In this document: piece by piece, positions 10,743 to 47,693 of the stretch
How the letters are laid out: each line of letters opens with the position of its first letter
How positions within the stretch are numbered: the first letter of the stretch is position 1
Source: Octopus sinensis
Taxonomy: Eukaryota
Length of the DNA stretch: 64,000 nucleotides
Assembly: GCF_006345805.1 (NCBI RefSeq)
Contig: NC_042997.1
Location: 193,378,001-193,442,000 of the forward strand
Reading direction: 5' to 3'
The notes under the pieces: model-generated
Seen by the model: only the letters and a program-made list of their open reading frames with translations
The model's database searches: none
What the model was told of the DNA's origin: nothing
Program-made: the position numbers and the translations under genes

Positions 10743-11540
10743 GACACTTGGCGGAGGTAAAGATAATGGACCGCACCCCCTTTGTCATGTTTATTTTATT
10801 TTTTTTATACTTACAGGAACCACTATATCGAGTGCGGAGATTCCGAATCTGCAAAAAAATCTCCATTTCAAAATTTAGATCCCCCTCCCCACTAAATTTC
10901 TTAAATTTTCACTTAAAATTTTTTTTTTACGAAATATGTAGAAAAATACAGAGATTATGGATTCTGAATAAAAAATTCTGTAAAATTTTTCAAAATAATA
11001 AATAGAATAAACATCCCTCCCCTCTCCACTATGACAAGAAGTGAAATTAAAGTGTTTTCCCTACTAATGTTTAATGACGAACATAACCCAACATGTTGTG
11101 GTCAGGGTCTTTTGGAATTAAGAGGGGTCATGTAAAAATTAAATTTTTTGCTCACACACACGCATATGTTTTTCTCCGTCACAACATATGAGTGTGAAAG
11201 GAAGGGGTGATGAAAACTCTACGGTGAACCCCCCCCCCCAATCAAACAGCGTTTCAATTCTGCGAGAGTATATGTGTGTGTATGTACAAGGGAGGTATGT
11301 GAATGTTTGTGTGTGCAACGGAAGTGGGATGGTGAGCATTCAACGCTGAAAAGAAAAATCAAACAGCGTTTCAACTCTGTGTATTTGGTATTTACTTGCC
11401 AGCTCACGTGTGTAGTCACGGTCAGCTTTATGTGGCCTTAAGTCAAGCAAGGAGGAAGGAAAACTTGAAAATTCTTTTGAAGGAAACAAGCAGTCAATGG
11501 ATGTTAGTTGCGAATAGATTTTTCACAAAATATTTGGTTA

Positions 11541-11942
11541 TAGGCGCAGGAGTCGCTGTGTGGTAAGTAGCTTGCTTACCAGCCACATGGTTCCGAGTTC
11601 AGTCCCACTGTGTGGCACCTTGGGCAAGTGTCTTCTAATATAGCCTCGGGCCGACCAAAGCCTTGTGAGTGGATTTGGTAGACGGAAACTGAAAGAAGCC
11701 CGTCGTATATATATATATACATGTGTGTGTGTGTGTGTGTTTGTCCCCCCAACATCGCTTGACAACCGATGCTGGTGTGTTTACGTCCCCGTAACCTAGC
11801 GGTTTGGCAAATGGGGCCGATAGAATAGGTACTAGACTTCCAAAGAATAAGTCCTGGGGTCGGTTTCCTCGACTAAAGGTGGTGCTCCAGCATGGCTGCA
11901 GTCAAATGACTGAAACAAGTAAAAGAGTAAAGAGTAAAGAGT
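11541..11942 (+). mobile_element. SINE family A, full length
   Basis: Complete head, core, microsatellite and (GTAAAGA)n tail as in 321-733. Confidence 0.85.
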
Positions 11943-12865
11943 TATAAAAGAATTATTAAACTAAAAACCTGGTTTTGTACCTTATTTATATACAAAATAC
12001 TACAATTAACCGTCAGTTTTGATGGTACGGGGTCAGCTAGTCCACTAATATATAATTCTCTTGTTCTTTTGTCTATCATAAGAGATGACTGACGAAAGAA
12101 GGGTTAGGGTTAGGGGTGGGAGAAAAGGTGTTCTGTTATCTTTAGAAATGTAAACAAAGTCACGTGTGTACCTATACCGAAGGATCACTAAAATATAAAC
12201 ATAAATGAGGATCGGATGAGTTTTGGGTTCGGGTTAGTGAGTTAACCCGCCCGTTGGTTATCCCTTTTTGGGAATCTTTTTCCTTCCTTTTATGCTCCGA
12301 CCGACCGCGCAAGCACAGCCTCGTGCATTCTCATCTTTCTTACCACTGCCGTCCATCTTTTTCCAAACGCTCTTTGCGGCACACTCCTCCTCTCCAGACG
12401 GATCTACATGCAAGTTCTGAGAAAGGACGGAATAATGTTATTTTGTTTATCTTTTCCCATATTCACCGCTTGAATTATCTGCCCTTCCTATCTGACACGC
12501 GGTGTCTTAGATTAACTCGAAGCACATGTTTCAGTTAATTTGATGAAATGATCGTTTTAAAAAAAGCATAACATTTCTCTAATATATTAAATCAGTATAT
12601 TGAAATATATCTCTTGAACTAATCCACAGACAAGAATCTTTTGAATTTGTCATCAACATCTCCGAGAGGTATTGTATTTCTTTTTTTATTCTCTACATCG
12701 TCTCGACTTACAATACTTTTCTCTCGATATGTTTTAAATATTTATTATATTATTATTAGCTTATTTTCCTCACGTTCTTCTGCTTTGTATTTTGTTTTAT
12801 ATTCATGAACCAAGAAATTTTACGCTAAAACACATTTAAAAGCAGAAATATAAGTTGATCTATAT

Positions 12866-13066
12866 CAGTGCTTTTCAAACTTTTTGCTGGAGTGGAACCC
12901 CAAGGAAACATTCCACTGGCTCGAGGAACCCCTGTGCAATAATTTAATAGTCTTATGCACACATATCTGCACAGGAGAATGAAAAATTACTGCCGATTTT
13001 AGCAGTTTTGTAACTTCTTGCGGAACCCCTGGACTGTACTGGCGGAACCCTGGTTGAAAACCACTG
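12866..13066. mobile_element. hAT (Charlie-like) MITE
   Basis: CAGTG..CACTG termini; 8-bp TSD ATCTATAT at 12858-12865 and 13067-13074. Confidence 0.9.
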
Positions 13067-13309
13067 ATCTATATGAACGCAAAACGACAGGTATTCGTCT
13101 AATATTAAGTATAACACAGTCACATTGCCCAGTCCCACTGCTTTGACGCGATGAAATTATCGAATATTATAATTCATTGTTATTACTTATTAAAGTCTCC
13201 CTTGCGATGTTACTTTGGGTTGGCCATTTCTATATTTTAGCAAATCATTACTCGTTTCTGTCCATAAACTTTCATGGTAACTACATATCCGCAAGAACTA
13301 AAACTGAAT

Positions 13310-13527
13310 GGTACTACTTAAGAACAGTGATCCCGGTGCGCGCACTCGCTCATCCGCGCTAGCTAGTCGTGACTAGTCGATCCTTACTTTGTTTTAAAAA
13401 ATTATTTACTTTGTGTTTTTGTGTTTTATTTACTTTGCTAGGTAGTCGTTCTAGAATCGACTAGTCACGACTAGCTAGCGCGGATGCACGACTGCGCGCA
13501 CCGGGACCACTCTTCTTAAGTAGTACC
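13310..13527. mobile_element. Short MITE of the GGTA/9-bp-TSD family
   Basis: TIR GGTACTACTTAAGAA..TTCTTAAGTAGTACC; TSD AAACTGAAT at 13301-13309 and 13528-13536. Confidence 0.9.
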
Positions 13528-13814
13528 AAACTGAATTCTAGAAGTTACGTTTTCTCTTGAAAACCAGAAAATACTCAATTCCTGATCAGCTTCTAATCCT
13601 CTGTAAAACTCAGGTGTTGCTTTTATAATTTAATCATTGCACACATGCTACAACCTCCATCTCACTATTTTAATGGCCTCTGCTCCTCACAGCTTGTTAG
13701 GCTCATGCTTCACCTACTCAGATATTCTCAACTCTTATGTTGTTCCCCTGATATCATCCTTGGGCGGACGTCAGACTTACGAAGCACCAATAGGTTGGAA
13801 TTTCTCCTTTTTCA

Positions 13815-14560
13815 CGAAGATTCTTCAGATTTTTTTTTATGGTACCCTTGAAAATGTTCTGGAGCATCTTTCAGCAAAAAGAAAAAAAAAATGCAAAAAA
13901 TGATGTCCTCGCCCCATCTTCCCCCCTCCAGATCGATTTTGGTGGCACCTCGCATTCACAAACTGTAAGAGAAGCCTTTTCGGTAAAAACAAAAAAAGAA
14001 AGAAAAGTAAAATATTTTCAGACGGAAAAGTGTAATTTAAGGGAAGTTTGGCTGTTGTTTCAAGCATATCCCATGGCCGGTAAGGTTTAGGGGTTGATAA
14101 AAATCATAAATTTTCAAAAAACTTATTTTTAATAGCATAAAAATGAGTTTATGCTATTAATGGGGAGAAAATATTGAAAAAAACATTAATACAAAGAATA
14201 AGTCCTGGGGTCGATTTGCTCGACTAAAGGTGGTGCTCCAGTATGGCCGCAGTCAAATGACTGAAACAAGTAAAAGAGTACTTGTCAGAGTGAGAAGGAA
14301 ACGAAAGTGGCCATGGGATATGCTAGAAACAACAGTCAAATCTCCCTTTAATCACATTTTTCATTTAAAAGTATTTCCTTTTTTTTCTTTTACTGTAGAG
14401 GCTTCTCTTATAGTTTTGAAGTGGATAGTGCCTCAAAAAAAATCATCGTATGTAGTGCCCACAAAATCAGTTAGGGGGCATAATTTTTTGCAAATTCTTT
14501 TTGCTCAAAAGATAGTCTAGAGCCTTTCCCAGGGCACTGCGAAAAGCATCTAAAAAATCC
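13815..14560. repeat. Diverged long inverted-repeat (foldback-like) element with a SINE A tail in its centre
   Basis: About 14031-14078 is inverted at about 14308-14355, and weaker inverted similarity extends about 250 bp on each side. SINE A tail at about 14189-14280. Confidence 0.55.
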
Positions 14561-15279
14561 CTGTCAAAACAGAAATTCCAATTTGGTGCTTCCTAAGTCC
14601 GACATCTGCCCATCCTTGTGTCTACCTCACAGGCAACATACTATTCATTGCACCTGGTCCTTCCTTCCTAGAACAGTTCTCTGGGATTTCATTTGCTTAT
14701 GTCTTTTCCTACAAGTGTTGACTAACTCAGTTCAAGAGGAACATTAATAACATCAATCCCACCATTTTAATTAAGCCTGTGAATGCCATGGGCACTGCTC
14801 CCAACTCCAGATCCAGTTTAGCCCCTCCCGATGTATTCCCTTATCATTATTCCTACTGTGTCTTATCTCAATTGCTCAATCCTTTCTCCTGAGAACCACA
14901 GCCCTCTAATCGTCCTTCACCACCCATTTACAGGTATCAACTTACAGAAGTTCAAATTGAAATTACTTTGACTATACCAGTCTGTTGGGCCTGCAAGAGC
15001 CATTGAAATCTACTACACTGGCTAACTATAGAAAAAAAACTGCCTCAACTTCTTCCATCTTTATCTTCTTTCCACCTACTCCCTCCTGCTCTTTTATAAT
15101 GCATGGTTAACATGTATCTCCTCTATAGAAAAAAAAACACCTGTATTTGTCCTCCTATTATACTTCAGCCTCTCAACATGGGATCATCATCATCATTTAA
15201 CATTCACTTGCCCATGTTTGCAGTACAGAATTTGTACATGAATAACGAATTGTTAGTCATAATATGTTTTGTAATGTTA

Positions 15280-15577
15280 GGCGATGTTGGTAACCATTCG
15301 AGCATGCCTTACTGGCACCTGTGCTGGCGGCATGTGTAAAGAGATTCGCACAAGGCCATTGCCGGTACCGCCTGACTGGCCCCCGTGCTGGTGGCACGTA
15401 AAAAACATCCACTACACTCTTGGAGTGGTTGGCGTTAGGAAGGGCATCCAGCTGTAGAAACTCTGCTAGATCAAGATTGGGGGCCTGGTGCAGCCATCTG
15501 GTTCGCCAGCCCTCAGTCAAAATCGTCCAACCCATGCTAGCATGGAAAGCAGGCGTTAAACGATGATGATGATGATG
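15280..15577 (+). mobile_element. 5'-truncated RTE 3' UTR (family C) with (GAT)n tail
   Basis: GGCACGTAAAA subrepeats, GGCGTTAGGAAGGGCATCCAGCTGTAGAAAC, CATGCTAGCATGG, GATGATGATG. Related copies at about 15880-16128, 20145-20342, 24925-25260, 26255-26400, 37848-38200 and 53700-54015. Confidence 0.75.
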
Positions 15578-16670: not shown

Positions 16671-16840
16671 AGTAGATGTAAATGTCCAACATGAAGTGTT
16701 TGTAAGGTTTTACAAGTTCATTTTGTTTCATTTATGGAAATGAATTTTTCTAAACTGTTGAAGTAATGCAGAATAATTTGCTACATTATTATATTTATTT
16801 TATCTTTTTCCCTTCTTTGTATACAGTTCATCAATTAAAA

Positions 16841-19800
16841 ATGCCAGAAAATTTGAAAATAAAAAAGAAAGCTACCAAAATGGATAAAAGTCTTGTGAAG
16901 GAGGAATCTGATGAAATTGTCTCTGATGTACAAGCATTTATAAAAGATCTCGGCCTCAATACATCAGTTCCATCTAGTATGAAAAGTAATGTATCTGCAC
17001 AACCACTGCCTGAGGATTTTAACTGGGGTGACATGATGCCAAAGAAAAAAGGAACCGTGCCGCCTTCTGCATCCCAAACTGAAAAAGTGTCAGCTGATAC
17101 ATCAAAGGATGCTGCAGACAGTAAAGGACCAAGTAAAAAAAAATCAAAGAACAAATATAGACCTCAAACAGATGAGGGTGTTGTGGGATTAAATAAAGTT
17201 TCTTCTGAGAAAGTCCAAGATGATGAGATTTCGAGTACCACAAAATCAGTTAAAAAAAAGAAAACTGGCGAGAAAAGTGGTAAGAAAGAATTTATAAAAT
17301 TAGTTGTTGAAGCAGGGACCGTTTGGTATGATTACCTAGAAAAGAAAAACATGGACAACAAGAGTAGAGACAACACCAATAAGACCAAGCGTACCAGTGC
17401 GAAACCTTTGGAGTCGGAAGCTGCAGAAATTTTCCAGAAGGATGTAGAAAATTATAAGAACCTGAGAGCTAAACGGGAACCTTCTGAAAGCAGTTGGTTT
17501 GAAAAGGTTATTGCATCTGGAACTTTGAGCGACAAAGAAGCAGCTTTCCAGCTTTATGTGACTCAATCACCTGTCCACAATCTCGATTCTTTGGATAATC
17601 TTATTGCTATGACACAGAAGAAAAGTCGCCATGTTAACATTAAAGCTGCACTTGTTTTGAAAGATCTTTTTATCAAATATATTTTGCCACCGGACAAAAC
17701 TCTAATGTCATTTCATGAACACAAAACTGATGAATTAAGTAATTCTAATCGAAAGAAGCAACTTGCCTTGTGGTACTTTGAAAACGAATTGAAGAAACGT
17801 TTTGGTGTTTTCGCTGAGTCATTAGTTAGAATGCTACAAGACAATGTCGATGCTTGCAAAGAAAAAGTATTGGCTATTATTAGTGAAATTCTTGTTTACA
17901 CTTCTGAACAAGAGACTATTTTACTGTCATCTCTTGTAAATAAAATTGGCGACCCTAGTTACAAAGTAGCATCAAAAACAATATACGTCTTGTCTAAATT
18001 TTTGAAACTTTGTCCATTGAAAAAATTAAAGGTTATCGATGAGGTAGAAATGCTTCTGTGCCGTTCTGGCATGAAAGAGAGGGGCCTCTATTACGCCTTT
18101 TGCTTCCTCTCTAATCTTCGGTTAAAAGAAGGCGAAAGCAAAATAGCTGAGAAACTTGTCAATGTTTACTTGAAATTCTTCCAGAAATACATTCAAAAAG
18201 GGGAAATGGACAATCGAATGCTTAGTGCTATTCTTTGTGGTATCAATTTTGCTTTTAAAATTATACATGAAAATCGAGAGTTCATTGCAGAACATACTGA
18301 AATACTGTACAAAACTGTACATCTTGTGAACTTTAATACTAGCTTACAGGTAATGATGTTGCTGTATCAAATAATGGAATCAGAAAGTTTATCTGATCGA
18401 TTTTATATGGTTCTTTATCGTAAAATGTGTGACCCTGCCTTGAAGAGTTCAAACCGACACATGCACTTCTTAAATCTTGTCTTCAGAGCCATTAAGAATG
18501 ACCACTCGGAAGCCAGAATAAAAGCTTTTATTAAAAGACTTCTTCAGATATGTCTTTATCAGTATCCTCCTTTCATCTGCGGTTCTCTCTGTCTCTTATC
18601 TGAAGTCTTTCGTGAGAAGCCTAAATTGCTGAACCTGGACCAAAACGCTGAAAACTTGATGGATAGCGAGGATGAGGAATGCTATAAAGATGTTGAGTTA
18701 GACAGTGATACAGAGTCTCCACAACAAGCAGCATCAGATTCAGAGTTGACGAATAAGGATGATAACGAAGAAGATTCCAAGTCATCTGGACAGGTTTCTT
18801 CTTGGGTACATCGTAAAAATTTAAAATATGTTCCCACCAACATATATTATATGCCACATCACCGTAACCCTCTTTATTGTCAAGCAGAGACAACACTATT
18901 TTGGGAATTATACTTACTGTCATTTCATTTTCACCCAACTGTCTCTCTTTATGCTTCGACATTACTAAACAATAAGTTTATTGACCATGAAGGTAATCCT
19001 TTGCAAGATTACACCTTGATACGTTTCCTTGACAGATTTGTATTCAAAAATCCAAAACAAATTAAAGAGAAGTCTTCTGAGCCTAAAAAGAATCGGTATA
19101 TACCAACAGGTATTAAACTAATTCCTGCAAATGATAGAAAATATCTTGAAAAAGCGAATAAAATTCCTGTTGAGGAGAAATATCTCTATCAGTATTTCTT
19201 GCACAAAAAGGCTGTTACTACTGACAAGGGGATTTTCAGTGAGGACGAAGAAGTTAGTGATGATGAATTTGACCAAATTCTTGACCAATATGAAAGAAAT
19301 GCAGATGATAAGGAATTAACAGCATTTGATTTTTATGGGGAACTTGGAAAACAAAGTGCGAAGAAGAGAAGCTTGGAAGCAGATTTTAGTAGCAGTGAGG
19401 GCTCTGATGAGGAGTCAGATGATGAAGTTGACTTAGGAGAAGATTTTATGGCAGAATATAAAGACTTTGGTGGGGAGAGTGATAATGAAAATAGTAACTG
19501 TGAGTTTGATGAAGAAAATATCAAATTTTCTGATGATAGTGATGGAGAGGATGATTATGAGAAATTTTGTAAACCCAAAATTAAAAAACTGAAAAGGCTT
19601 AAAAAGGAATCTGAACAGAATCCTCATGATACGTCTAAGTTTTTCGTGGCTGCCGAGGAATTTTCTCATATGCTAGAAGATAACATTGTGAGTAACATTG
19701 GAAGCCAGGCAGTTGTGAACAAAGACAAATCAAGTGCCAAACAGATGAAATGGGAAATGGCCAGGGAACAGTGGATGAAAAAATCTGATTGGAAACAGAA

Positions 19801-19906
19801 ACGACAGCCAAAATGGAAAAAGAAAAGTGGTAATAAAAGTAAATTTGTTACGAAACCTAAACAGAAAGGAGTAGGGAAAAAACAGAAAAGGAAAAATTGG
19901 AAGTAA
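16841..19906 (+). CDS. CEBPZ: CCAAT/enhancer-binding protein zeta (Mak21/Noc1, CBF domain), single coding exon, about 1021 aa
   Basis: Uninterrupted ORF with family motifs GTLSDK, SSLVNKIGDP, DRFYMVLYRK, RIKAFIKRLLQ, HRNPLYC, HFHPTVSLYA, DYTLIRFLDRFVFKNPK, an acidic tract and a basic C-terminus. Start placed at Met26 of the listed ORF because a polypyrimidine tract plus AG (16825-16826) lies just upstream. AATAAA at 19921. Confidence 0.92.
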   Translation: MPENLKIKKKATKMDKSLVKEESDEIVSDVQAFIKDLGLNTSVPSSMKSNVSAQPLPEDFNWGDMMPKKKGTVPPSASQTEKVSADTSKDAADSKGPSKKKSKNKYRPQTDEGVVGLNKVSSEKVQDDEISSTTKSVKKKKTGEKSGKKEFIKLVVEAGTVWYDYLEKKNMDNKSRDNTNKTKRTSAKPLESEAAEIFQKDVENYKNLRAKREPSESSWFEKVIASGTLSDKEAAFQLYVTQSPVHNLDSLDNLIAMTQKKSRHVNIKAALVLKDLFIKYILPPDKTLMSFHEHKTDELSNSNRKKQLALWYFENELKKRFGVFAESLVRMLQDNVDACKEKVLAIISEILVYTSEQETILLSSLVNKIGDPSYKVASKTIYVLSKFLKLCPLKKLKVIDEVEMLLCRSGMKERGLYYAFCFLSNLRLKEGESKIAEKLVNVYLKFFQKYIQKGEMDNRMLSAILCGINFAFKIIHENREFIAEHTEILYKTVHLVNFNTSLQVMMLLYQIMESESLSDRFYMVLYRKMCDPALKSSNRHMHFLNLVFRAIKNDHSEARIKAFIKRLLQICLYQYPPFICGSLCLLSEVFREKPKLLNLDQNAENLMDSEDEECYKDVELDSDTESPQQAASDSELTNKDDNEEDSKSSGQVSSWVHRKNLKYVPTNIYYMPHHRNPLYCQAETTLFWELYLLSFHFHPTVSLYASTLLNNKFIDHEGNPLQDYTLIRFLDRFVFKNPKQIKEKSSEPKKNRYIPTGIKLIPANDRKYLEKANKIPVEEKYLYQYFLHKKAVTTDKGIFSEDEEVSDDEFDQILDQYERNADDKELTAFDFYGELGKQSAKKRSLEADFSSSEGSDEESDDEVDLGEDFMAEYKDFGGESDNENSNCEFDEENIKFSDDSDGEDDYEKFCKPKIKKLKRLKKESEQNPHDTSKFFVAAEEFSHMLEDNIVSNIGSQAVVNKDKSSAKQMKWEMAREQWMKKSDWKQKRQPKWKKKSGNKSKFVTKPKQKGVGKKQKRKNWK

Positions 19907-26930: not shown

Positions 26931-27352
26931 TAGTTAGTTAGTTAGTTAGTTAATTTTTGGCTCAAAAGCAAATAGCAAGGCCATGTAGGGGGACATGGAG
27001 TTAAGTACAGGGTGGTGTTCATGTAAAGAGTTCAGGCCACTTGAGGTCAAGAGAGACTTTGAACAAAGTGGTCGTCGGCATCTTCACCATCTCGTCTGGC
27101 AGCTTGTTTCACGGATCCGCAACCCGGACAGAGAAAGCTCCTCTCCTTCGATTGAGATGAAATCGTCGCAGGTAGAGCTTTTCGGAATGACCCCGCAGCC
27201 GACGCTCTGGAGCAGGAGTGAAGAACAGCTCTTTCGAGAGGTTACACCTTCCGTTTATGATGTTGTGAGCGAGAATGAGATCACCATGGCAGCGGCGTTT
27301 TTCTAGAGAATAAAGGTCGAGCGTCTTCAGCCTTTCTTCATAAGACAAATTT
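26931..27352 (-). mobile_element. CR1-clade LINE 3' fragment (second family) with (CTAA)n tail
   Basis: SYEERLKTLDLYSLEKRR..GDLI..LRGHSEKL..RRGAFSVRV; (TAGT)n at 26931-26950. Confidence 0.88.
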
Positions 27353-28216
27353 TTGAGACCATGAACTATATCTCGTGTTTAAGAAAAAAACAAAACATTT
27401 TGCATTTTATTTTTTATGAACGTCGTCACTTAAACTCTCTCACTTTGTCTTTCCCGTAAAACTCTCTGCCTCCTTCTTCCACTTTTCTTTATCTTATTTT
27501 TTTTTTGTTAGACGCTATCAAAAAGCTATGGTTGATTTTTATGAACGTTGTCCCTTACTCTCTCTCTCTCACTTTGTCTTTCCCTTGAAACTCTCTGCCC
27601 CTCTTCCACTTTTCTTTATCTTATTTTTTTTTTGTTAGATGCCATCAAAAAGCTATGGCTGAAAATAGATTTTACCACTATCCGCGGGTGCCTCGAGGAA
27701 AAAAATAAGTTGACAAAACCCCGGTAGGGTGTTGACAAATGTCCTCCTAAAATTGGAGCGACATGCGTGCTAATTTGTGGACGTACATAAATTACAATCA
27801 CGTACACACACACATCATGCCTTTTATAGATATGATATATACACACACACGTGTATATACACATTTTAGTAAAACTGCAAAATTATCCCAGACTGTTACA
27901 CATTCTTTTTTATTTGTTTTCAGTGATGTGAATGTGGCCATGCTGGGGCTCCTCTTTATGTGTATATATTCAAAAGTGGGTTCATATTTGTGTATAGCCT
28001 TATTTCTATACATACATAAATATGTGTGTATATATATAAACACATGTACATATACTGTATATAAATATATACACACACAAAGAGAGTGTGTTGATGAATG
28101 TTACAACACTGATTGTTAGTCTGTAGAATGCAATATATGTGATGCAGGTTTGATTCCCGAGTAAACCATTTTACAATAATAATAATAAGATCGAAGTTTA
28201 ATATTTCTTAAAATAT

Positions 28217-31200
28217 TTATTTGTCAAAATAAAAAAAAGCAAATGGTTGGCGTCCAGGAATAATTCCAAAAACCATCAAAGAATTTTCTGAAACATCAAA
28301 ACCAAGAACTTCAAAGACTTCATTATCATAATTCCTGAGGATTAAATATTTAGGATTATCTTCAGATATCAGGATTTCATTATCTTCAGATGTTTCCTCT
28401 TCAATATGTTGAGGTATTTCATAAATATTGTTATCTTTATCTGTTATATAAACACATTCACCAATTATAGTTAAATGAGGTCTTGAAATATCATATTCCA
28501 GACCAAAACCTGTTCTTTCTTCTATTCTTATCCTCCTCACCAAAGACTTTTCCCTGAACCATTCCACAAAACACAAATGATCCCAATCTCCAGACTCCTT
28601 CTTGATCTCCCTCCTCAAAACAACAACATCACCAAAAGATGTGACTCCCACATCATGCACTCCTTCATCTGCCTCCAACCTTCCCAATCTCCTCACCTCC
28701 CCGTGACACACTTCATCTTTACATTTCCCATCCTTAATATCAACCACATCCACATAATAAGGGTCAAAGATGTCGGTGTCTTTGCAGTCCTTGTTTTCCC
28801 ATCTTCTTCGGTATTTCTTGTATCTCTCTTCTTGAGTTATGTCTCTAATATAATGACCACCACACACGAGTTGATTGTCGTTGTATTTATAAATCCTCTT
28901 GTAGTATTTCTCAGTTCTGATGGTTTTTAAACGACAGAAATCCCTGTTGAACACCCTCATTTCTCTCCCAAAGGTGACAATGAAACATTCATCTGTCCAC
29001 CGACATATGTCCAGTGGTGGTTGTTGTTGTTGTTCATGTTGAAGTATGTCCACTGTTGTTGTTGTTGTTCTCATTAATGTGACACTTTCTCGAAATATCA
29101 ACACACTCACATTCTCATCTAACTTAATTAGTTTACTACTCTGGTCCCTAATGTCCACATAATCATAATTAACATGTTCCTCGAATGCAGGAATGGAAAA
29201 AGGGACCATTGCTGTCCTATATGGAAGTCTCCTCACTGATATTTCATCAATTCCTGAATTATTAATCTCCGCTATGTAATTACCACATCTCACCTTTAAT
29301 CTACTTTTACTAATTATTTCACCTGATTTACCTCTTCTTCTTCTTCCTCCATCTCCATCTCCATCTCCTCCACTGTATTTCAGTTTATTAATTAATTCAT
29401 TACTGAATATTTCCTTGTTCGTCTCAGATGTAATGGAAGGGAAACGAAGACCAGAATCAAGATTTAATAACGACACAGATTCCAGAATGTTCACTTGGTC
29501 CCCATCAATCTTTATGCAATGACATTCAATCAATTCAGTATGTACACACCAGTAAATACCCCCAACTTTTCTCCATATTACACCATAAGGGATGAGACTT
29601 GGCCAAACTTTAGATGTCTGCAAATCTTCTCCATTCAGTTGAAATATTTCTTTTCTTTTAGGAACCGTGGCCATTATGTGTGATTCTTGTGTAAAACACA
29701 CACCACCAACTAAACTTGCAACATTTCTGTGACATAGCAACTCTCCGTCTTCATCAAATATTTTAACATTTCCATTATTGGCTTTTTCACACGCAACTGT
29801 CTTTCCTTTATCAGAGATATCAAAATCTTTTACTTGAACAGGACATTCGTCTGTTTGTAAACGAGCAACTGGGAAGCTTTCTCGATTCACCATAAACAAC
29901 CCTTCAACATACAATCCTTTCTTTTTTCCCCTCCTAGAGCTTCCAACAAATCTTGGTCCTTTACAGTTTATACTGAAGAAATATACTTCACCTTTATAAA
30001 TTCTTTCATTTAAAAATATTCTCTTGTATTCCCCATTCTGGGTCAAACACAAAATGTTTTGATAATCAGGACAATCTAAATATTTCTCCCACTGACCATG
30101 AATGTACAAAAAACTGTCATCAATTGTCATCCGGTCATCACGAAGTAAGTGCTGCATGTAGTGTCTAACTGAATGTAAATATTGACCATCACTATTTAAG
30201 AAAACGATGAATCTTTCATTTAAGACAATGATGACATCTTCAGCAGTAACATTAATATCCAGGATGGGAGCATAATAATTATTTCCATCTTCTCCTCTCC
30301 CTAATGATGGTTCAGGTATGTGTATTTGTTTTGTTTCCTTCACATTTGAATGTATTTCATCAATATCAACAAAATACAAAAGACTTCTATTTTCGCTTTT
30401 ACTACAAACTAGTTGATTGTTTGATAAAGAAGCCACACATCTATATTCATCTCTTGTCTGGTAAATTACCAACAACAATGGAAATTCCACTTTTAATGTC
30501 AACAGTTGGGATCTATTACCAAAATAATCCCAATTTGTAATAATCAGTGTGTTTGAGTGCCATCGACATATTTTAATAAATCTATAAGCATTCCATTTGA
30601 TTGAATCCACAAGTTGACCATCCAATGTGAATATCTTAATGTTTCCATTCTTCTCGTCCCATCCTGCAATCAGGTTATTTTCTGTAATAACCAAATATTT
30701 AATCCATACTGGTAATTTGTCTTCCAAATTTTGAGGGAGAGGAATATGTCTGGCTTTATCAGAAACTGTCAGGTCTTGTAGATATAAAGTAGAAGACAAC
30801 ATTTCACTGACAGAAATGTTTCTGGAAAATACATCTACCAGATCGATATGATAATTAAGTTGATTATTTATAAATAGATCATTAACCAACAAATTATGAT
30901 CATTTATAGCAAACATACGGCTGTTGTCTATCAGATAAACAAATGTTTGGTCAATAGATCCACTGTAGAGATTTAGGGGATGTTTCACTTGGGACATTAA
31001 AACACTGGGGACCATCTTAATACTATAAAGATGATGACTTACATCACCACCATCAAAAATGAAGAAAGCTTCTGTTTCGTACTCTGAGTCACCGGATACC
31101 ATCTCAATACTACTAATACTACCATCACTACTACTAATACTACTATCACTGCCACCACTTAGTATTGTAAGTATATCACCAGCACTTAGTATTGTACTTA

Positions 31201-33820
31201 GACCACCACCATCTATTGTAGTGTTGTACTGAAAAGCTTTTCCCCTTGTAACAATTAACAGCTTTTGTGTTTCCTTGTCTATTGATAAGGATTTCACAAA
31301 AAAAGGGATTTTAATTCTATGAATTCTTTCAACTTGATTATAATCTTTCCTAATGGCTAAAATATCTAAATATGATGGTTTATCACAATAACAAACAATT
31401 TCACCTTCACCCATCTTACACACCCGTATATAAGGCTGCCTTAATGATACACTTCTCACTGTCTTTGATAGGTTTCCGATGACCCTTAATTGTTTCAGTA
31501 GGGGTAATGTGACACCTATTTGATTAGAATCCCATCGACATATATCTGTAGCTGTAGATGGCAGAGATAATCTAGACACAATGTTTCCTTCATTAGAAAT
31601 GTATAACAAGCAATCATGGTTGATGTCAAACACCACCAACTGTCCATTGGCCAGATTACATATTTCACCAATGACAAGTTTTTTGTCATTCTCCTTTTCT
31701 TTGAGTCGTATATTTAGATTTCTGATATAAGGATTTTTTGTGCGTAAATAACAGCCAGACGACTGGCCTTGATACTTGTAAAGAAGAACCCTGTTGAGTT
31801 GAGTGTCCGGCACATAAACAGTTCCTTGGAAAACAGCAATGTCAGGGTGAACAGGGAAAGGTAGTTTCCATTGCCATTTAATTTCTCCATATATCTCATA
31901 ACATATCAAAATAGAGTGTCTCTTGAAGAGGACATGAAAATAAACATTATCAGAGTAGATGTGATGAGGGTAGCCATAGAATGGAAGGTATTTTTGAAAA
32001 AGTTCTTCACCACATGTGGAATAAAATACCATTTTATTTTCGCTTCCATTTACGACTACAAAATTAATTGGAGTTGCAGCAATGGTGACATTATAATGTC
32101 CCATAGAAATTCTTTCTATAATGTCAACTTTATCTTCGTTGATCAAAAGGATATGGACCTCATTTTTGTTTTCATTGGTGGTCACAGCTAAAAACTTATT
32201 TGATACAATATGACATATTTTCATGTAATCAGTTTGGACCTTTATTAAAGGGCCTTTTCTTAGTTCAGGACAGGTGATATACTGAAATCCTTTAATTTCA
32301 CAATAAAATACCAGGAATCTGTTTGCGTTTATTCTACAAAAGAAAGAAGGAAGCTCAAGGAAAACTAAATTATTTTGGTTAATTATTTCCCCATTATCAG
32401 TGAATAATTTAGCTTCCTTATTTATGTAAATTATTAATATAGAAGATGTAGACATAGGAAGAATATTTGTAATGTTGTAGCAATCCTCAATATAAATATA
32501 GTCTTTTAAACTGGGGGTACGTAGCTGGTGGTTGTATGATAGTTTGGGCCAAAAGTCTTTATTTATTTGAATGGCATGTGGTTTGCCACAATAATCTGTT
32601 ACCAAAATGGTATCTTTACCAACAGAAATAGAGCAGCATTTCCTGCCAATGTCCCTCATTGTTACACCACCTTTAGCCGAAATTTTATAAATAATTTGTC
32701 CCTGGAGGACATAGAAATAGTTTTGGTACTGAGAGATTTTACTTGGGAGGTGCAGAGAATGGGTCTCTACTTCCCATAACTGTTGGCCATCCAGTTTATA
32801 ACAGATTATTCTGTTAATACTGGAAAATGTGATTAAAAGTATATTCTGGACCCCTACAGTAATATCTGTTGGCGTTTCTTTGGTCATGAATTCATATCGA
32901 ATTCTATTATCTTCCCAATCAATTTGGTAAACAGTCTTACCAAACATTTCTACACCTATAAGTGTAGAATGTTCCAAGTAAGCAACCAAATGTAATCCCA
33001 ACTGTATCCTTTTAATCTTGAAAGCTGTGGGGCTGATAATAAGAATCATTTTTTGGAAGGGGAGGGTTGCTAGAACCATGTCTTCACCAATTCTGGTGAA
33101 ACTGGTGACAGAAGATGGACAATGAGCATCATTTCTGTCACCGTTTCTTGTCAGACAACATATTGTCATACAATGGTGGGAATATGTTACTACTCCCTCC
33201 TGTATGACAATAATATTGGATATTATTGTGCTTTTGTCAAATTCTTCCCCAGATTCCTTGATCTTTGCCTCTCTGGTCAGAACTGGCGAAAGAGGCCGAA
33301 ATTTTGTGGTTATTTTTGGTGGCTCAATGGTTTTGTGTTTGTCTTGTAGAATATTTCTCTGTAAATAGTGTTCCAGGAACAATTCTAGCTTTCCAAAAAT
33401 AATAAATTCTTGATTGTAATCGCTTTTTTTAATGTCTTTCATCAAAATTTCTATTCTCTGTGTAAATTCTTTTAGAAAAGTATTTTCATTCATTCCTATA
33501 TTTTTAAAAAAAGTACGTATTTCTTCCCGAGAATTTATCAACAAATTCATTTTGTCTTCATATGCATTGAATCTTGTATAAAATATATGTTTGTCAAAAC
33601 TATTTCGTCTTCGCATTATTTCCCTCTTTTCAGGGTCTCCTTTATGTCTTTTTTGTTTTTTTGTTGGCTCAGATGAAGCTTGTTTCTCTGACATTTCTCT
33701 CCTTGAACTGTCATCTCTCTCATATTTACACCTTTGATGGTCAACTCCTTCTCCATACCATTTTGTTTTTAAGTTACTTAAAGCCCTTTTCTGAGGGGTA
33801 GGTTTTGTTTGGTCTTCCAT
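28217..33820 (-). CDS. 1867-aa protein, single coding exon: basic/helical N-terminus plus about six tandem NHL-like beta-propeller domains
   Basis: 5.6-kb open frame in AT-rich DNA with no transposon motifs. Recurring blade motifs (PTDITVG, HPDIAVF..VYVPDT, TDICRWD, VKDFDISDKG, HDVGVTSFGDVVV). Acceptor TTCATTACAG 7 nt before an ACTATGG start. No signal peptide or TM segment is evident. Domain assignment is by eye. Confidence 0.8.
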   Translation of the reverse strand: MEDQTKPTPQKRALSNLKTKWYGEGVDHQRCKYERDDSSRREMSEKQASSEPTKKQKRHKGDPEKREIMRRRNSFDKHIFYTRFNAYEDKMNLLINSREEIRTFFKNIGMNENTFLKEFTQRIEILMKDIKKSDYNQEFIIFGKLELFLEHYLQRNILQDKHKTIEPPKITTKFRPLSPVLTREAKIKESGEEFDKSTIISNIIVIQEGVVTYSHHCMTICCLTRNGDRNDAHCPSSVTSFTRIGEDMVLATLPFQKMILIISPTAFKIKRIQLGLHLVAYLEHSTLIGVEMFGKTVYQIDWEDNRIRYEFMTKETPTDITVGVQNILLITFSSINRIICYKLDGQQLWEVETHSLHLPSKISQYQNYFYVLQGQIIYKISAKGGVTMRDIGRKCCSISVGKDTILVTDYCGKPHAIQINKDFWPKLSYNHQLRTPSLKDYIYIEDCYNITNILPMSTSSILIIYINKEAKLFTDNGEIINQNNLVFLELPSFFCRINANRFLVFYCEIKGFQYITCPELRKGPLIKVQTDYMKICHIVSNKFLAVTTNENKNEVHILLINEDKVDIIERISMGHYNVTIAATPINFVVVNGSENKMVFYSTCGEELFQKYLPFYGYPHHIYSDNVYFHVLFKRHSILICYEIYGEIKWQWKLPFPVHPDIAVFQGTVYVPDTQLNRVLLYKYQGQSSGCYLRTKNPYIRNLNIRLKEKENDKKLVIGEICNLANGQLVVFDINHDCLLYISNEGNIVSRLSLPSTATDICRWDSNQIGVTLPLLKQLRVIGNLSKTVRSVSLRQPYIRVCKMGEGEIVCYCDKPSYLDILAIRKDYNQVERIHRIKIPFFVKSLSIDKETQKLLIVTRGKAFQYNTTIDGGGLSTILSAGDILTILSGGSDSSISSSDGSISSIEMVSGDSEYETEAFFIFDGGDVSHHLYSIKMVPSVLMSQVKHPLNLYSGSIDQTFVYLIDNSRMFAINDHNLLVNDLFINNQLNYHIDLVDVFSRNISVSEMLSSTLYLQDLTVSDKARHIPLPQNLEDKLPVWIKYLVITENNLIAGWDEKNGNIKIFTLDGQLVDSIKWNAYRFIKICRWHSNTLIITNWDYFGNRSQLLTLKVEFPLLLVIYQTRDEYRCVASLSNNQLVCSKSENRSLLYFVDIDEIHSNVKETKQIHIPEPSLGRGEDGNNYYAPILDINVTAEDVIIVLNERFIVFLNSDGQYLHSVRHYMQHLLRDDRMTIDDSFLYIHGQWEKYLDCPDYQNILCLTQNGEYKRIFLNERIYKGEVYFFSINCKGPRFVGSSRRGKKKGLYVEGLFMVNRESFPVARLQTDECPVQVKDFDISDKGKTVACEKANNGNVKIFDEDGELLCHRNVASLVGGVCFTQESHIMATVPKRKEIFQLNGEDLQTSKVWPSLIPYGVIWRKVGGIYWCVHTELIECHCIKIDGDQVNILESVSLLNLDSGLRFPSITSETNKEIFSNELINKLKYSGGDGDGDGGRRRRGKSGEIISKSRLKVRCGNYIAEINNSGIDEISVRRLPYRTAMVPFSIPAFEEHVNYDYVDIRDQSSKLIKLDENVSVLIFRESVTLMRTTTTTVDILQHEQQQQPPLDICRWTDECFIVTFGREMRVFNRDFCRLKTIRTEKYYKRIYKYNDNQLVCGGHYIRDITQEERYKKYRRRWENKDCKDTDIFDPYYVDVVDIKDGKCKDEVCHGEVRRLGRLEADEGVHDVGVTSFGDVVVLRREIKKESGDWDHLCFVEWFREKSLVRRIRIEERTGFGLEYDISRPHLTIIGECVYITDKDNNIYEIPQHIEEETSEDNEILISEDNPKYLILRNYDNEVFEVLGFDVSENSLMVFGIIPGRQPFAFFYFDK

Positions 33821-34321
33821 AGTGAATCTGTAATGAAATAATGGAAAACATTTAGCTTTGTGAAAATATTAAAGTTTCAGGGAGATGATGTTTACTTCAT
33901 TATTTGAAAAACAAACAAAACATTTATGTATTTCTGTCAGTGAATTAATCTTGTATAATTAATATTTAAACAACTTTCTGTTGTAATAATAATGATTAGA
34001 ATTAAACAACTTATTATAATCTGTTTTAAGATGTATTAATAAGTTTCATTAATTACATGGAGTCTAAATATTAGCAATAATTATATTCACTGGAAATGAT
34101 ATTTGCTCTCAACATCACAAAGTAATAATCATGTGTGGTTTAAATTTATTTAACGATAATTAGTCAAAGAGATTCCCCTGCTCCAAAAGTACTCAATAAT
34201 GAGACACTCTATGCTGTAGAGAAAATTAACTTTAATTGGTATACATGCTATATTATGTCCCAACACACAGCAATCATGTTCAAACTTTGTTAACATGGAA
34301 CAATTAGCAAAACATAGACTT

Positions 34322-35150
34322 TATGTGCTGAAGTGTAACGGCTAGAGTAAGAATAGCCTGGGCAAAGTTTAGAGAGCTCTTACCTCTGTTGGTGACTAAA
34401 GGCCTCTCGCTTAGAGTAAAAGGCAGACTGTATGATGCATGTGTATGAACAGCCATGCTACATGGTAGTGAAACATGGGCCGTGACTGCTGAGGACATGC
34501 GTAAGCTCACGAGAAATGAAGCCAGTATGCTCCGATGGATGTGTAATGTCAGTGTGCATGCTCGACAGAGTGTTAGTACCCTGAGAGAAATGTTGGACCT
34601 AAGGAGCATCAGTTGTGGTGTGCAAGAGAGACGATTGCGCTGATATGGTCATGTGGCGAGAATGGATGAAGATAGGTGTGTGAAAAAGTGCCAATCCCTA
34701 GCAGTTGAGGGAACCCGTGGAAGAGGTAGACCCAGGAAAACCTGGGACGAGGTTGTGAAGCACGACCTTCGAACTTTAGGCCTCACTGAGGAAATGACCA
34801 GCGACCGAGACCTTTGGAAATATGTTGTACGTGAGAAGACCAGGCAGGACAAGTGAGCCCAGCCCACTTATGAATGCCTTTCCTCCCTTGGACACAAAGA
34901 CCTGTTGAGGCAAGCGAAGTCGATATAGAACCTCATTCAACGACAGGCACCCATGCCAACCCCCTTTGCTTGCAAAGACATGTTAGGGCAAGCGAAAGCG
35001 AAATCGAACTGAACCAGCCAGGATCCCTAGTCTGGTGGTACGTAAAAAGCACTATCCGACTCGTGGCCGATGCCAGCGCCGCCTCCACTGGCTTCCGTGC
35101 CGGTGGCACGTAAAATACACCAATCCAACCGTATGACAGGCACACAATTC
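34322..35150 (+). mobile_element. RTE-clade LINE 3' portion (ORF end plus 3' UTR)
   Basis: AWAKFRELLP..KGRLYDACV*..MLHGSETWA..RRLR*YGHVARMDEDR..RGRGRPRKTW. The UTR contains the family C subrepeats. Confidence 0.9.
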
Positions 35151-47135: not shown

Positions 47136-47693
47136 ATGTCTAAAAAGCGGCAAGGTTACCTTGAATGGGATGATTACTTCATGTCAGTGGCTTTCCTCTC
47201 TGCTCAACGTAGCAAAGACCCAAGAACTCAGGTAGGAGCTTGTATTGTTAACGAAGATAGACGTATTGTTGGCATCGGATATAACGGTATGCCTCGTGGT
47301 TGTAGTGACGATGATTTTCCTTGGTGCAATGAAGGTGTCACTGAGCTAGATAACAAAAATCTCTACGTATGTCATGCTGAGCTTAATGCAATTCTCAATA
47401 AGAATTCTGCAGACGTTCGCAATTGCACTATATATGTTGGTTTGTTTCCTTGCAATGAATGTACTAAAGTCATTATACAGTCTGGAATTAAAGAAGTCAT
47501 ATACTATTCGGATAAATATAAGGACCAAATTACCTCTAAAGCTTCTCGAATTATGTTGGATCGTGCTGAAATAAAATATCGCCAGTATCGACCTACAAAC
47601 GGACAAATTGTTATAGATTTTACTTCATTAGAAGAAAAGAAAGACCGGATTATAAGTTCAGTTTTGTCCCCCATTTCTGAACTTTCACTTTAG
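47136..47693 (+). CDS. DCTD: dCMP deaminase copy 1 (A type, HAE intact; upstream ATG mutated to ACG at 47097)
   Basis: [49 protein letters not shown]: dCMP deaminase signature with Zn ligands and catalytic Glu; no introns. Confidence 0.9.

Follow-up and report, generated by a model that had tools for sequence, protein, structure and literature searches.

The subject of this analysis is a single large gene in a 64,000-nucleotide stretch of Octopus sinensis DNA (contig NC_042997.1, positions 193,378,001 to 193,442,000), called the window below, in which all coordinates are given. The gene lies on the minus strand at 28217-33820, where one uninterrupted frame of 1867 codons runs from ATG to TAA. 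Across this interval the longest open reading frame (ORF) in the other frames is 117 amino acids (aa), and the G+C content is 33-35%. Since a frame of 5.6 kb is intact at this G+C content and the others do not exceed 117 aa, it is not open by chance, and the giant protein of the original prediction does occupy a single frame. Very probably, the protein is built of six tandem beta-propellers of the NHL type and belongs to a family restricted to octopods. The exon and its 5' boundary are as follows.

28217-33820, minus strand: the whole coding exon (1867 codons and the TAA), defined by the ORF listing and by paralogue homology
33828-33850, minus strand: AG splice acceptor preceded by a polypyrimidine tract, 7 nt 5' of the ATG, reading ttcattacag and then attcactATG, with the AG at 33829-33828

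Homology to an O. vulgaris paralogue spans 28033-33976 at about 85% nucleotide identity, so it passes each end of the ORF by about 150-190 nt. The bases around the acceptor (ttacag, then attcactATG) are also found in the O. vulgaris locus L001. Because the acceptor is conserved in this paralogue and is used by its gene model, an intron in the 5' untranslated region (5'-UTR) is likely in the O. sinensis gene too. Thus the description of the gene as intronless holds for the coding part, which is one exon, but the acceptor 7 nt before the ATG speaks against it for the gene as a whole. The paralogue homology extends about 150 nt 5' of the acceptor, and therefore duplication at the DNA level is favoured and retroposition disfavoured. 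The relatives are organised in a similar way. The Argonauta P0037 locus and that of O. vulgaris P0003 can be translated directly, as a single coding exon, and ORFs of 5.4-5.5 kb occur at P0009, P0013 and P0020. Five further loci from three species contain a frame of 5.4 kb or longer with no interruption, and a sixth, P0012, is split by a change of frame.

AlphaFold2 was run separately on residues 1-880 and 930-1867, with 30 family sequences each, and gave a mean predicted local distance difference test score (pLDDT) of 66 and 62, respectively. Beyond a helical N-terminus, both halves are predicted to be all-beta, with short strands grouped in fours. We divided the protein into an N-terminal region and six units, A to F, of about 240-330 aa. 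Strands were counted when they had at least three residues, and about 24 of them correspond to about six blades.

33230-33820, minus strand: N-terminal region, residues 1-197; a basic, disordered stretch precedes predicted helices, which occupy residues 63-157 (33350-33634)
32507-33229, minus strand: unit A, residues 198-438, 24 predicted strands, about six blades, pLDDT about 85
31721-32506, minus strand: unit B, residues 439-700, 23 predicted strands, about six blades
30821-31720, minus strand: unit C, residues 701-1000, 18 predicted strands, cut by the modelling split; DICRW at residues 759-763; the most NHL-like unit
31016-31219, minus strand: insertion of low complexity within unit C (residues 868-935, approximately), rich in G, S and I and specific to this copy, supported by Tandem Repeats Finder (TRF) and repeat families D15 and D17
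29942-30820, minus strand: unit D, residues 1001-1293, 23 predicted strands, about six blades, pLDDT about 80; KICRW at residues 1083-1087
29216-29941, minus strand: unit E, residues 1294-1535, 11 predicted strands, pLDDT at most 55, yet strongly conserved; GVCFT at residues 1373-1377
28220-29215, minus strand: unit F, residues 1536-1867, 25 predicted strands, about six blades, pLDDT 80-90; DICRW at residues 1604-1608

The insertion in unit C has grown on tandem repeats of 21 nt and 27 nt, both in frame, at 31104-31211; it corresponds to a gap in most paralogues. Unit F has a charged helical insert at about residues 1663-1675. When the two modelled halves were compared with the PDB by Foldseek, the best 50 matches listed for each half were multi-propeller proteins only, including IFT-A subunits, DDB1, LRP4/LRP2, UTPs and axonemal WD proteins, with E-values down to 1e-21 for the N-terminal half and 1e-15 for the C-terminal half. 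The TM-scores are 0.14-0.24 at 7-11% identity; low values are to be expected where the orientations of the domains differ. The repeated propellers that had been proposed from the letters of the DNA are therefore found again as all-beta blades in both halves and in the structural matches. About six tandem propellers are well supported by these models; the exact blade counts are estimates from the strand counts.

Self-comparison of the 1867-aa protein by BLASTP at permissive settings detected no internal repeat. Profiles were compared with hhalign, using segments of an alignment of 15 full-length relatives (A1). Sliding segments of 240 aa matched one another with up to 95% probability; the start of unit E matched the start of unit D at 93%, and the closest internal match of unit F was unit C, at 95%. 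Nine of the 15 unit pairs score 26.8-61.8, above every one of 60 controls made by shuffling one partner's columns (maximum 24.4). These pairs are C-F (61.8), D-E (54.0), C-D (43.1), B-D (38.4), B-C (36.6), A-B (34.1), A-C (33.5), D-F (32.1) and A-D (26.8), and each of the six units is linked above the controls to at least one other. The aligned registers superpose residues 238, 495, 760, 1084, about 1375-1385 and 1605, which places the six motif positions named in the original prediction in register with the repeat. The word ICRW, seen three times (units C, D and F), is expected 0.003 times from the protein's own composition; weaker equivalents of the motif are FFCRI at residues 493-497, SFTRI near residue 240 and the GVCFT of unit E. 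The common core of the units reads ...NG.L.V.D......L.YI...G.IV..L.L.S...DICRW..N.IGVTLP..KQL..I.N......V.L...Y.RV.... Judged by these profiles, the internal repeat is real but strongly diverged.

The type of the propeller was assigned by profile comparison. No Pfam family was found for the 1867-aa protein by hmmscan at E-values up to 10. Among the 15 relatives nothing reached the Pfam threshold, with NHL (PF01436) appearing in one of them at E 3.7 and DUF4934 below threshold in nine. A single-sequence phmmer search of the PDB returned noise only (SMAD3 at E 0.4), and a word-indexed homologue search with the family alignment found no relatives beyond octopods. With a family profile, the best matches among PDB sequences were the NHL domains of Brat, TRIM71, TRIM3 and TRIM2, all below threshold (E 0.03-0.7). 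An index-free profile search with alignment A4 (residues 251-1450) over 1.84 billion representative proteins gave 40 matches. The family members ranked first, followed by two bacterial repeat proteins of a generic kind; next was a tier with E-values from 3e-5 to 7e-4. Nine proteins of this tier were scanned by Pfam, and a B-box and/or NHL repeats are present in eight of them; one member of the tier, P0072, is from the bivalve Potamilus streckersoni, and another, P0074, matches Pfam NHL at 36 bits.

We aligned 12 B-box/NHL proteins of this tier (A5) and compared each unit with them by hhalign. All six units match: unit A at 97.1% (E 7e-11), unit B at 90.4% (E 1.4e-6), unit C at 99.2% (E 6e-20), unit D at 97.7% (E 2.5e-12, 217 columns), unit E at 95.8% (E 8e-9) and unit F at 93.8% (E 1.7e-7). 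Every match begins near the start of the A5 propeller, and the lengths are 130-217 columns. Column-shuffled units reach at most 0.5% and a score of 19.2, whereas the real units score 52.8-142.9. Since unit F lies outside the profile that found the A5 proteins, its match is independent. The whole-family profile matches A5 at 98.7% (E 1.7e-16, residues 707-842), and the signature common to the family and A5 is L.NGQ..V.D..N.CL......G.....L.L.S.P.D.C......V.VTLP..KQ...I. The A5 alignment in turn matches the solved NHL domains of TRIM3, TRIM2, TRIM71, Thin and Brat in the PDB (4e-17 to 3e-28), and also the N-terminal regions of TRIM2, TRIM3 and TIF1-beta through the B-box and coiled coil. At the level of sequence profiles, the chain from the octopod units to B-box/NHL proteins and on to canonical TRIM-NHL proteins is significant at every link, and the relation to the TRIM-like NHL propellers of molluscs, first brought up as a comparison, has gained significant matches from all six units. 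We conclude from the profiles that units A to F are homologous to one another and to the NHL propeller of B-box/NHL proteins.

The N-terminal region differs from that of TRIM proteins. Residues 1-60 and 158-200 are predicted to be disordered and residues 63-157 helical, at low confidence (pLDDT 25-59), and the region is weakly conserved with Argonauta (8-22% identity). There is one cysteine in residues 1-199, and there are 1-8 in the relatives. No Pfam zinc-finger match indicates a RING or B-box in the protein, residues 1-200 compare with the B-box/NHL proteins at 0.1% probability (hhalign), and residues 1-199 have no sequence similarity to B-box or TRIM coiled-coil regions. The helical N-terminus without RING or B-box, as read from the sequence at the outset, agrees with these results. 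The highest 19-residue Kyte-Doolittle mean of the protein is 1.44 and the N-terminus is hydrophilic; therefore there is no signal peptide and no membrane span. The protein is presumably intracellular, and the cytoplasmic location suggested for it fits these properties.

The family comprises about 60 clusters, collected by two word-indexed searches and the index-free search. The sources shown are all O. vulgaris, O. sinensis, O. bimaculoides or Argonauta hians, a statement that leaves out eight short fragment matches (P0053 and, in the tier below, P0063-P0069). All full-length relatives are named "uncharacterized" or "hypothetical". The gene is thus not a one-to-one orthologue of a characterised gene, and its full-length relatives are uncharacterised octopod proteins. 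We found no publication on an octopod six-propeller family, either by the LOC identifiers of six members or by keyword, and no mention of TRIM or NHL in an oyster immune-expansion paper. The Argonauta proteins are 37-38% identical and colinear through all six units, and the residues of the motif do not vary in the alignment. Because the Argonauta proteins are colinear over the six units, the architecture predates the split between Octopus and Argonauta.

Many members are clustered. At least 23 O. vulgaris clusters are on one 29.19 Mb chromosome, and five located members, including a neighbour of 1788 aa, lie within 21.87-22.68 Mb (at 21.87-21.90, 22.02-22.05, 22.16-22.19 and 22.66-22.68 Mb), two of them about 5 kb apart. 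Several O. sinensis members are on the 15.1 Mb contig CM016888.1, one of them located at 11.26 Mb. Two divergent subfamilies each place proteins of O. vulgaris, O. sinensis and O. bimaculoides in one 90% cluster. In contrast, the subfamily of the 1867-aa gene is expanded and its copy number varies between species.

Some members have irregular structures. The O. vulgaris gene models P0001, P0002 and P0008 (2053-2526 aa) contain C2H2 zinc-finger or DUF4371 Pfam domains; they are probably models fused with neighbouring genes and not true architectures. P0012 (locus L002, O. vulgaris OX597841.1; 10001-11056 against 11052-15515) shifts frame near residue 352-363, which leaves an ORF of 4.5 kb. Its N-terminal part is 58% identical to the 1867-aa protein and the remainder 82%, which suggests a chimeric or frameshifted copy with a gene model that spans the break by a short intron. 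Downstream of P0009 (locus L001, O. vulgaris OX597841.1, 20972-22336) there are two extra tandem copies of the final 440 bp or so, made up of the C-terminal 82-91 codons and the 3' flank; the 1867-aa gene has one only.

Among seven coding sequences, the pairwise dN/dS estimated by the Nei-Gojobori method (NG86) is 0.37-0.70. The 1867-aa gene and its closest relative differ by a dN of 0.095 and a dS of 0.150, an omega of 0.63. Per unit, omega ranges from 0.2 to 1.0 (0.99 in unit F against the closest relative), and dS varies from 0.07 to 0.69 inside one pair. This unevenness of dS suggests mosaic histories or gene conversion. A dN/dS near 1, derived from 85% nucleotide and 70% amino-acid identity, was dropped since NG86 gives 0.52. 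Strand positions are more conserved than loops (entropy 0.65 against 0.83, p = 8e-7). From these estimates, the proteins of the family are constrained to the fold yet change fast, under weak purifying selection.

The gene lies among the following features of the window.

16766-19906, plus strand: CCAAT/enhancer-binding protein zeta (CEBPZ; CBF/Mak21, Noc1-like), one unbroken ORF with a probable start at 16841, PF03914 at E 3e-37
27000-27400, minus strand: remnant like the reverse transcriptase (RT) of a long interspersed nuclear element (LINE)
34300-34900, minus strand: second LINE-like RT remnant
47136-47693, plus strand: dCMP/cytidine deaminase ORF, PF00383
50574-51062, plus strand: dCMP/cytidine deaminase ORF, PF00383
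54482-55045, plus strand: dCMP/cytidine deaminase ORF, PF00383
57610-58206, plus strand: dCMP/cytidine deaminase ORF, PF00383
60333-60911, plus strand: dCMP/cytidine deaminase ORF, PF00383

The CEBPZ of the window is 93% identical to that of O. bimaculoides, and the exact O. sinensis protein is absent from a collection of 15 billion proteins. The Argonauta orthologue of CEBPZ is also a single exon, as locus L003 translates directly, and no family member was found within 10 kb of it. The two LINE-like remnants flank the 1867-aa gene within 1 kb on either side, and the downstream one reads ...LSLEKRRCHGDLILAHNIINGR... on the strand of the gene. Repeats of 150-400 bp resembling short interspersed nuclear elements are scattered over the window and are common to the O. 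vulgaris loci. The five deaminase ORFs (162-198 aa) are single-exon and arranged in tandem at a spacing of about 3.3 kb, with PF00383 E-values of 1e-22 to 1e-27. In the one translated, at 47136-47693, both zinc motifs (HAE and PCNEC) are intact. O. vulgaris keeps the array too: four copies, at 92-98% nucleotide identity to those of the window, lie in the 10.6 kb of locus L005 that begin with the queried gene. Because dCMP deaminase is single-copy in most animals, this array in octopus is unusual.

We take the best explanation of the data to be a family of octopod proteins with six NHL propellers, derived from TRIM-NHL proteins and serving as non-catalytic multivalent binding platforms, and give it a probability of about 0.62. 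Several points weigh against it. The copy is missing from the protein collection: annotation has either overlooked it or rejected it as a gene. With no Pfam NHL match at threshold, it is only profile-profile comparison that assigns the units to the NHL class. The models of units C and E are incomplete, the mean pLDDT is 62-66, and the blades are inferred from strand counts and not from coordinates. A pairwise dN/dS of 0.5-0.6 fits relaxed constraint equally well as diversifying selection. The net charge of the units, -17 to +4, is no clear pointer to RNA binding.

The first of these points could mean that the family is real but that its 1867-aa member is a dispersed duplicate without a function of its own, either silent or in decay, that has yet to acquire a stop codon. 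The exact protein is absent from the 15-billion-protein collection, in which the best match is 75-85% identical, though the neighbouring deaminase genes are annotated on the O. sinensis chromosome, where three of the window's deaminase ORFs have exact protein matches. The gene is on a 213 Mb chromosome, apart from the O. sinensis cluster on CM016888.1. The private low-complexity insertion of in-frame minisatellites and the omega values of 0.63, and 0.99 in unit F, would also fit a copy of this kind. However, its 5.6 kb frame is intact in DNA of 34% G+C; at a dS of 0.15 to the closest paralogue the frame has been kept open and dN is below dS; and the splice acceptor and the flanking UTR homology are retained. 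Starting from the deaminase array, the O. vulgaris locus is colinear with the window at about 97%, up to about 4 kb before the expected start of the orthologue. Orthologous non-coding DNA is thus about 97% identical between the two species, whereas the best protein match reaches only 75-85%, which indicates that the gene is unannotated in O. sinensis and, if present there, in O. vulgaris. On balance, we consider a silent copy unlikely.

A slightly less likely alternative is that the protein is a scaffold of conserved function, comparable to the multi-propeller subunits of IFT-A, of axonemes or of pre-ribosomal complexes, and takes no part in diversifying recognition. Such proteins are the best structural matches, and the two divergent subfamilies, with three Octopus species in one 90% cluster each, also speak for it. 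But the TM-scores and identities of these matches correspond to a shared tandem-propeller topology only, and no relatives were found outside octopods. Moreover, the subfamily of the 1867-aa gene is expanded, clustered and variable in copy number, with a dN/dS of 0.5-0.7.

It is quite improbable that the propellers are of the WD40, YWTD or another class and that their resemblance to NHL is convergent or compositional. The NHL matches in Pfam are below threshold, the two bacterial repeat proteins, a delta-60 repeat protein and a WD40 protein, outrank the NHL tier with many short stretches, and weak DUF4934 and WDR90 propeller matches occur in some relatives (WDR90 or WDR35 below threshold in 1-3 of 15). 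Yet the matches to A5 are long, run colinearly from the NHL domain start in all six units and share a specific motif, and the shuffled units stay far below the real ones. No WD40, Ldl_recept_b or EGF Pfam matches are present in the 1867-aa protein or the 15 relatives.

Finally, the single coding exon, the many copies across several chromosomes, the LINE-like fragments on both sides and the fusion of some gene models to DUF4371 or zinc-finger domains might suggest that the gene is the cargo, or the coding ORF, of a mobile element or of a virus that became endogenous, but this is very improbable, given that no transposase, RT, integrase or capsid domains were found by Pfam in the protein and 15 relatives, that paralogue homology ends about 150-190 nt beyond the ORF, that the flanks have AT-rich microsatellites only and no terminal inverted or long direct repeats (TIRs, LTRs), that the window contains no second copy or fragment of the gene, that the homology 5' of the acceptor argues for DNA-level duplication, and that matches in a viral fold library are generic propellers only.

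The six-propeller NHL architecture can be set beside several known systems. TRIM-NHL proteins (Brat, LIN-41/TRIM71, TRIM2, TRIM3, TRIM32, Mei-P26, Thin) and the B-box/NHL proteins of the A5 tier, one of them from a bivalve, have the same type of propeller, and octopod units D and E carry the blade motif N.N[IV]KIF..DG.L, which resembles the NHL repeat consensus. However, the octopod protein has no RING, no B-box and no recognisable TRIM coiled coil; it has six propellers in place of a single C-terminal one, is restricted to octopods and stays below the Pfam NHL threshold. With no RING or B-box, six domains instead of one and no Pfam NHL match at threshold, the 1867-aa protein fails to qualify as a member of the TRIM-NHL class. 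LRP4, LRP5/6 and LRP2 likewise have several propellers per chain, six-bladed as is predicted for units A, B, D and F, and LRP4/LRP2 are among the top Foldseek matches of the N-terminal half. These receptors are extracellular, with YWTD propellers separated by EGF domains, a signal peptide and transmembrane segments. The octopod protein, in contrast, has no hydrophobic N-terminus, no segment resembling a transmembrane span and no EGF or Ldl_recept_b Pfam match. DDB1, IFT-A (WDR19, IFT140, IFT122) and the UTPs are intracellular multi-propeller scaffolds too, and are the best structural matches overall. Their propellers are seven-bladed and of the WD40 type, usually two or three in number and often followed by tetratricopeptide (TPR) or other helical regions, and they are conserved across eukaryotes. 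The octopod protein shows no sequence relation to them, and the TM-scores are those given above. Thus the likeness to multi-propeller proteins of the LRP or DDB1 type is one of topology only.

Another comparison concerns the mode of evolution. The fish finTRIM family and the primate TRIM5 cluster resemble the octopod family in their tandem clusters, variable copy number and raised dN/dS, and in these families it is the recognition domain that diversifies. They are expansions of innate immunity that keep the RING, B-box and coiled coil together with a B30.2/SPRY domain. The octopod family has no RING or B-box and carries NHL instead of B30.2/SPRY. The immune or RNA-binding role of the original prediction stays a hypothesis, on which lineage restriction, tandem expansion and a dN/dS of about 0.5-0.6 bear indirectly.

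We suggest the following history and mode of action. The family may have arisen from a TRIM-NHL-like gene through loss of the module with RING and B-box and through internal duplication of the NHL propeller to six copies; both steps would have taken place before the split between Octopus and Argonauta. Since there is no RING, the protein has no ubiquitin ligase activity of its own. It would act as a non-catalytic multivalent platform, in which ligands, either RNA or protein, would be bound on a face of each propeller. NHL domains bind RNA or protein by one face of the propeller, as in Brat, LIN-41/TRIM71 and TRIM2/3. The N-terminal helices may contribute oligomerisation. Paralogues would differ in their ligands, which would suit targets that vary, for instance RNA or proteins of foreign or selfish origin. 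Candidate ligands are products of viruses or transposons, edited mRNAs and cytoskeletal partners. The structural and evolutionary part of this reading, six NHL-type propellers in an octopod-restricted family, we regard as very likely. The mechanism as a multivalent binding platform, by analogy with known NHL proteins, is tentative. Rather more doubtful is a diversifying system of intracellular recognition that would sense or restrict RNA or proteins of viruses or transposons, or would regulate the octopus transcriptome, which is heavily edited.

The proteins of this family are already in databases as uncharacterised entries; what is new is the recognition of their architecture, origin and restriction to octopods. 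For annotation, the gain is an intact 1867-aa O. sinensis gene that is lacking in protein sets. The NHL propeller is usually present once per protein, behind the E3-ligase module of TRIM proteins, whereas in octopods the module appears to have been dropped, the propeller is present six-fold and there are dozens of genes. The family is an example of a new architecture and a lineage-specific gene family arising from an old domain. The gene families with a known expansion in octopods include protocadherins, C2H2 zinc fingers and GPCRs, the GPCR expansion having a paper devoted to it, and the family adds a candidate to this short list. It also provides concrete loci for questions of immunity or RNA regulation. 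If the proposed role is true, the family would be an invertebrate counterpart of the vertebrate TRIM immune expansions, acting by RING-independent multivalent binding.

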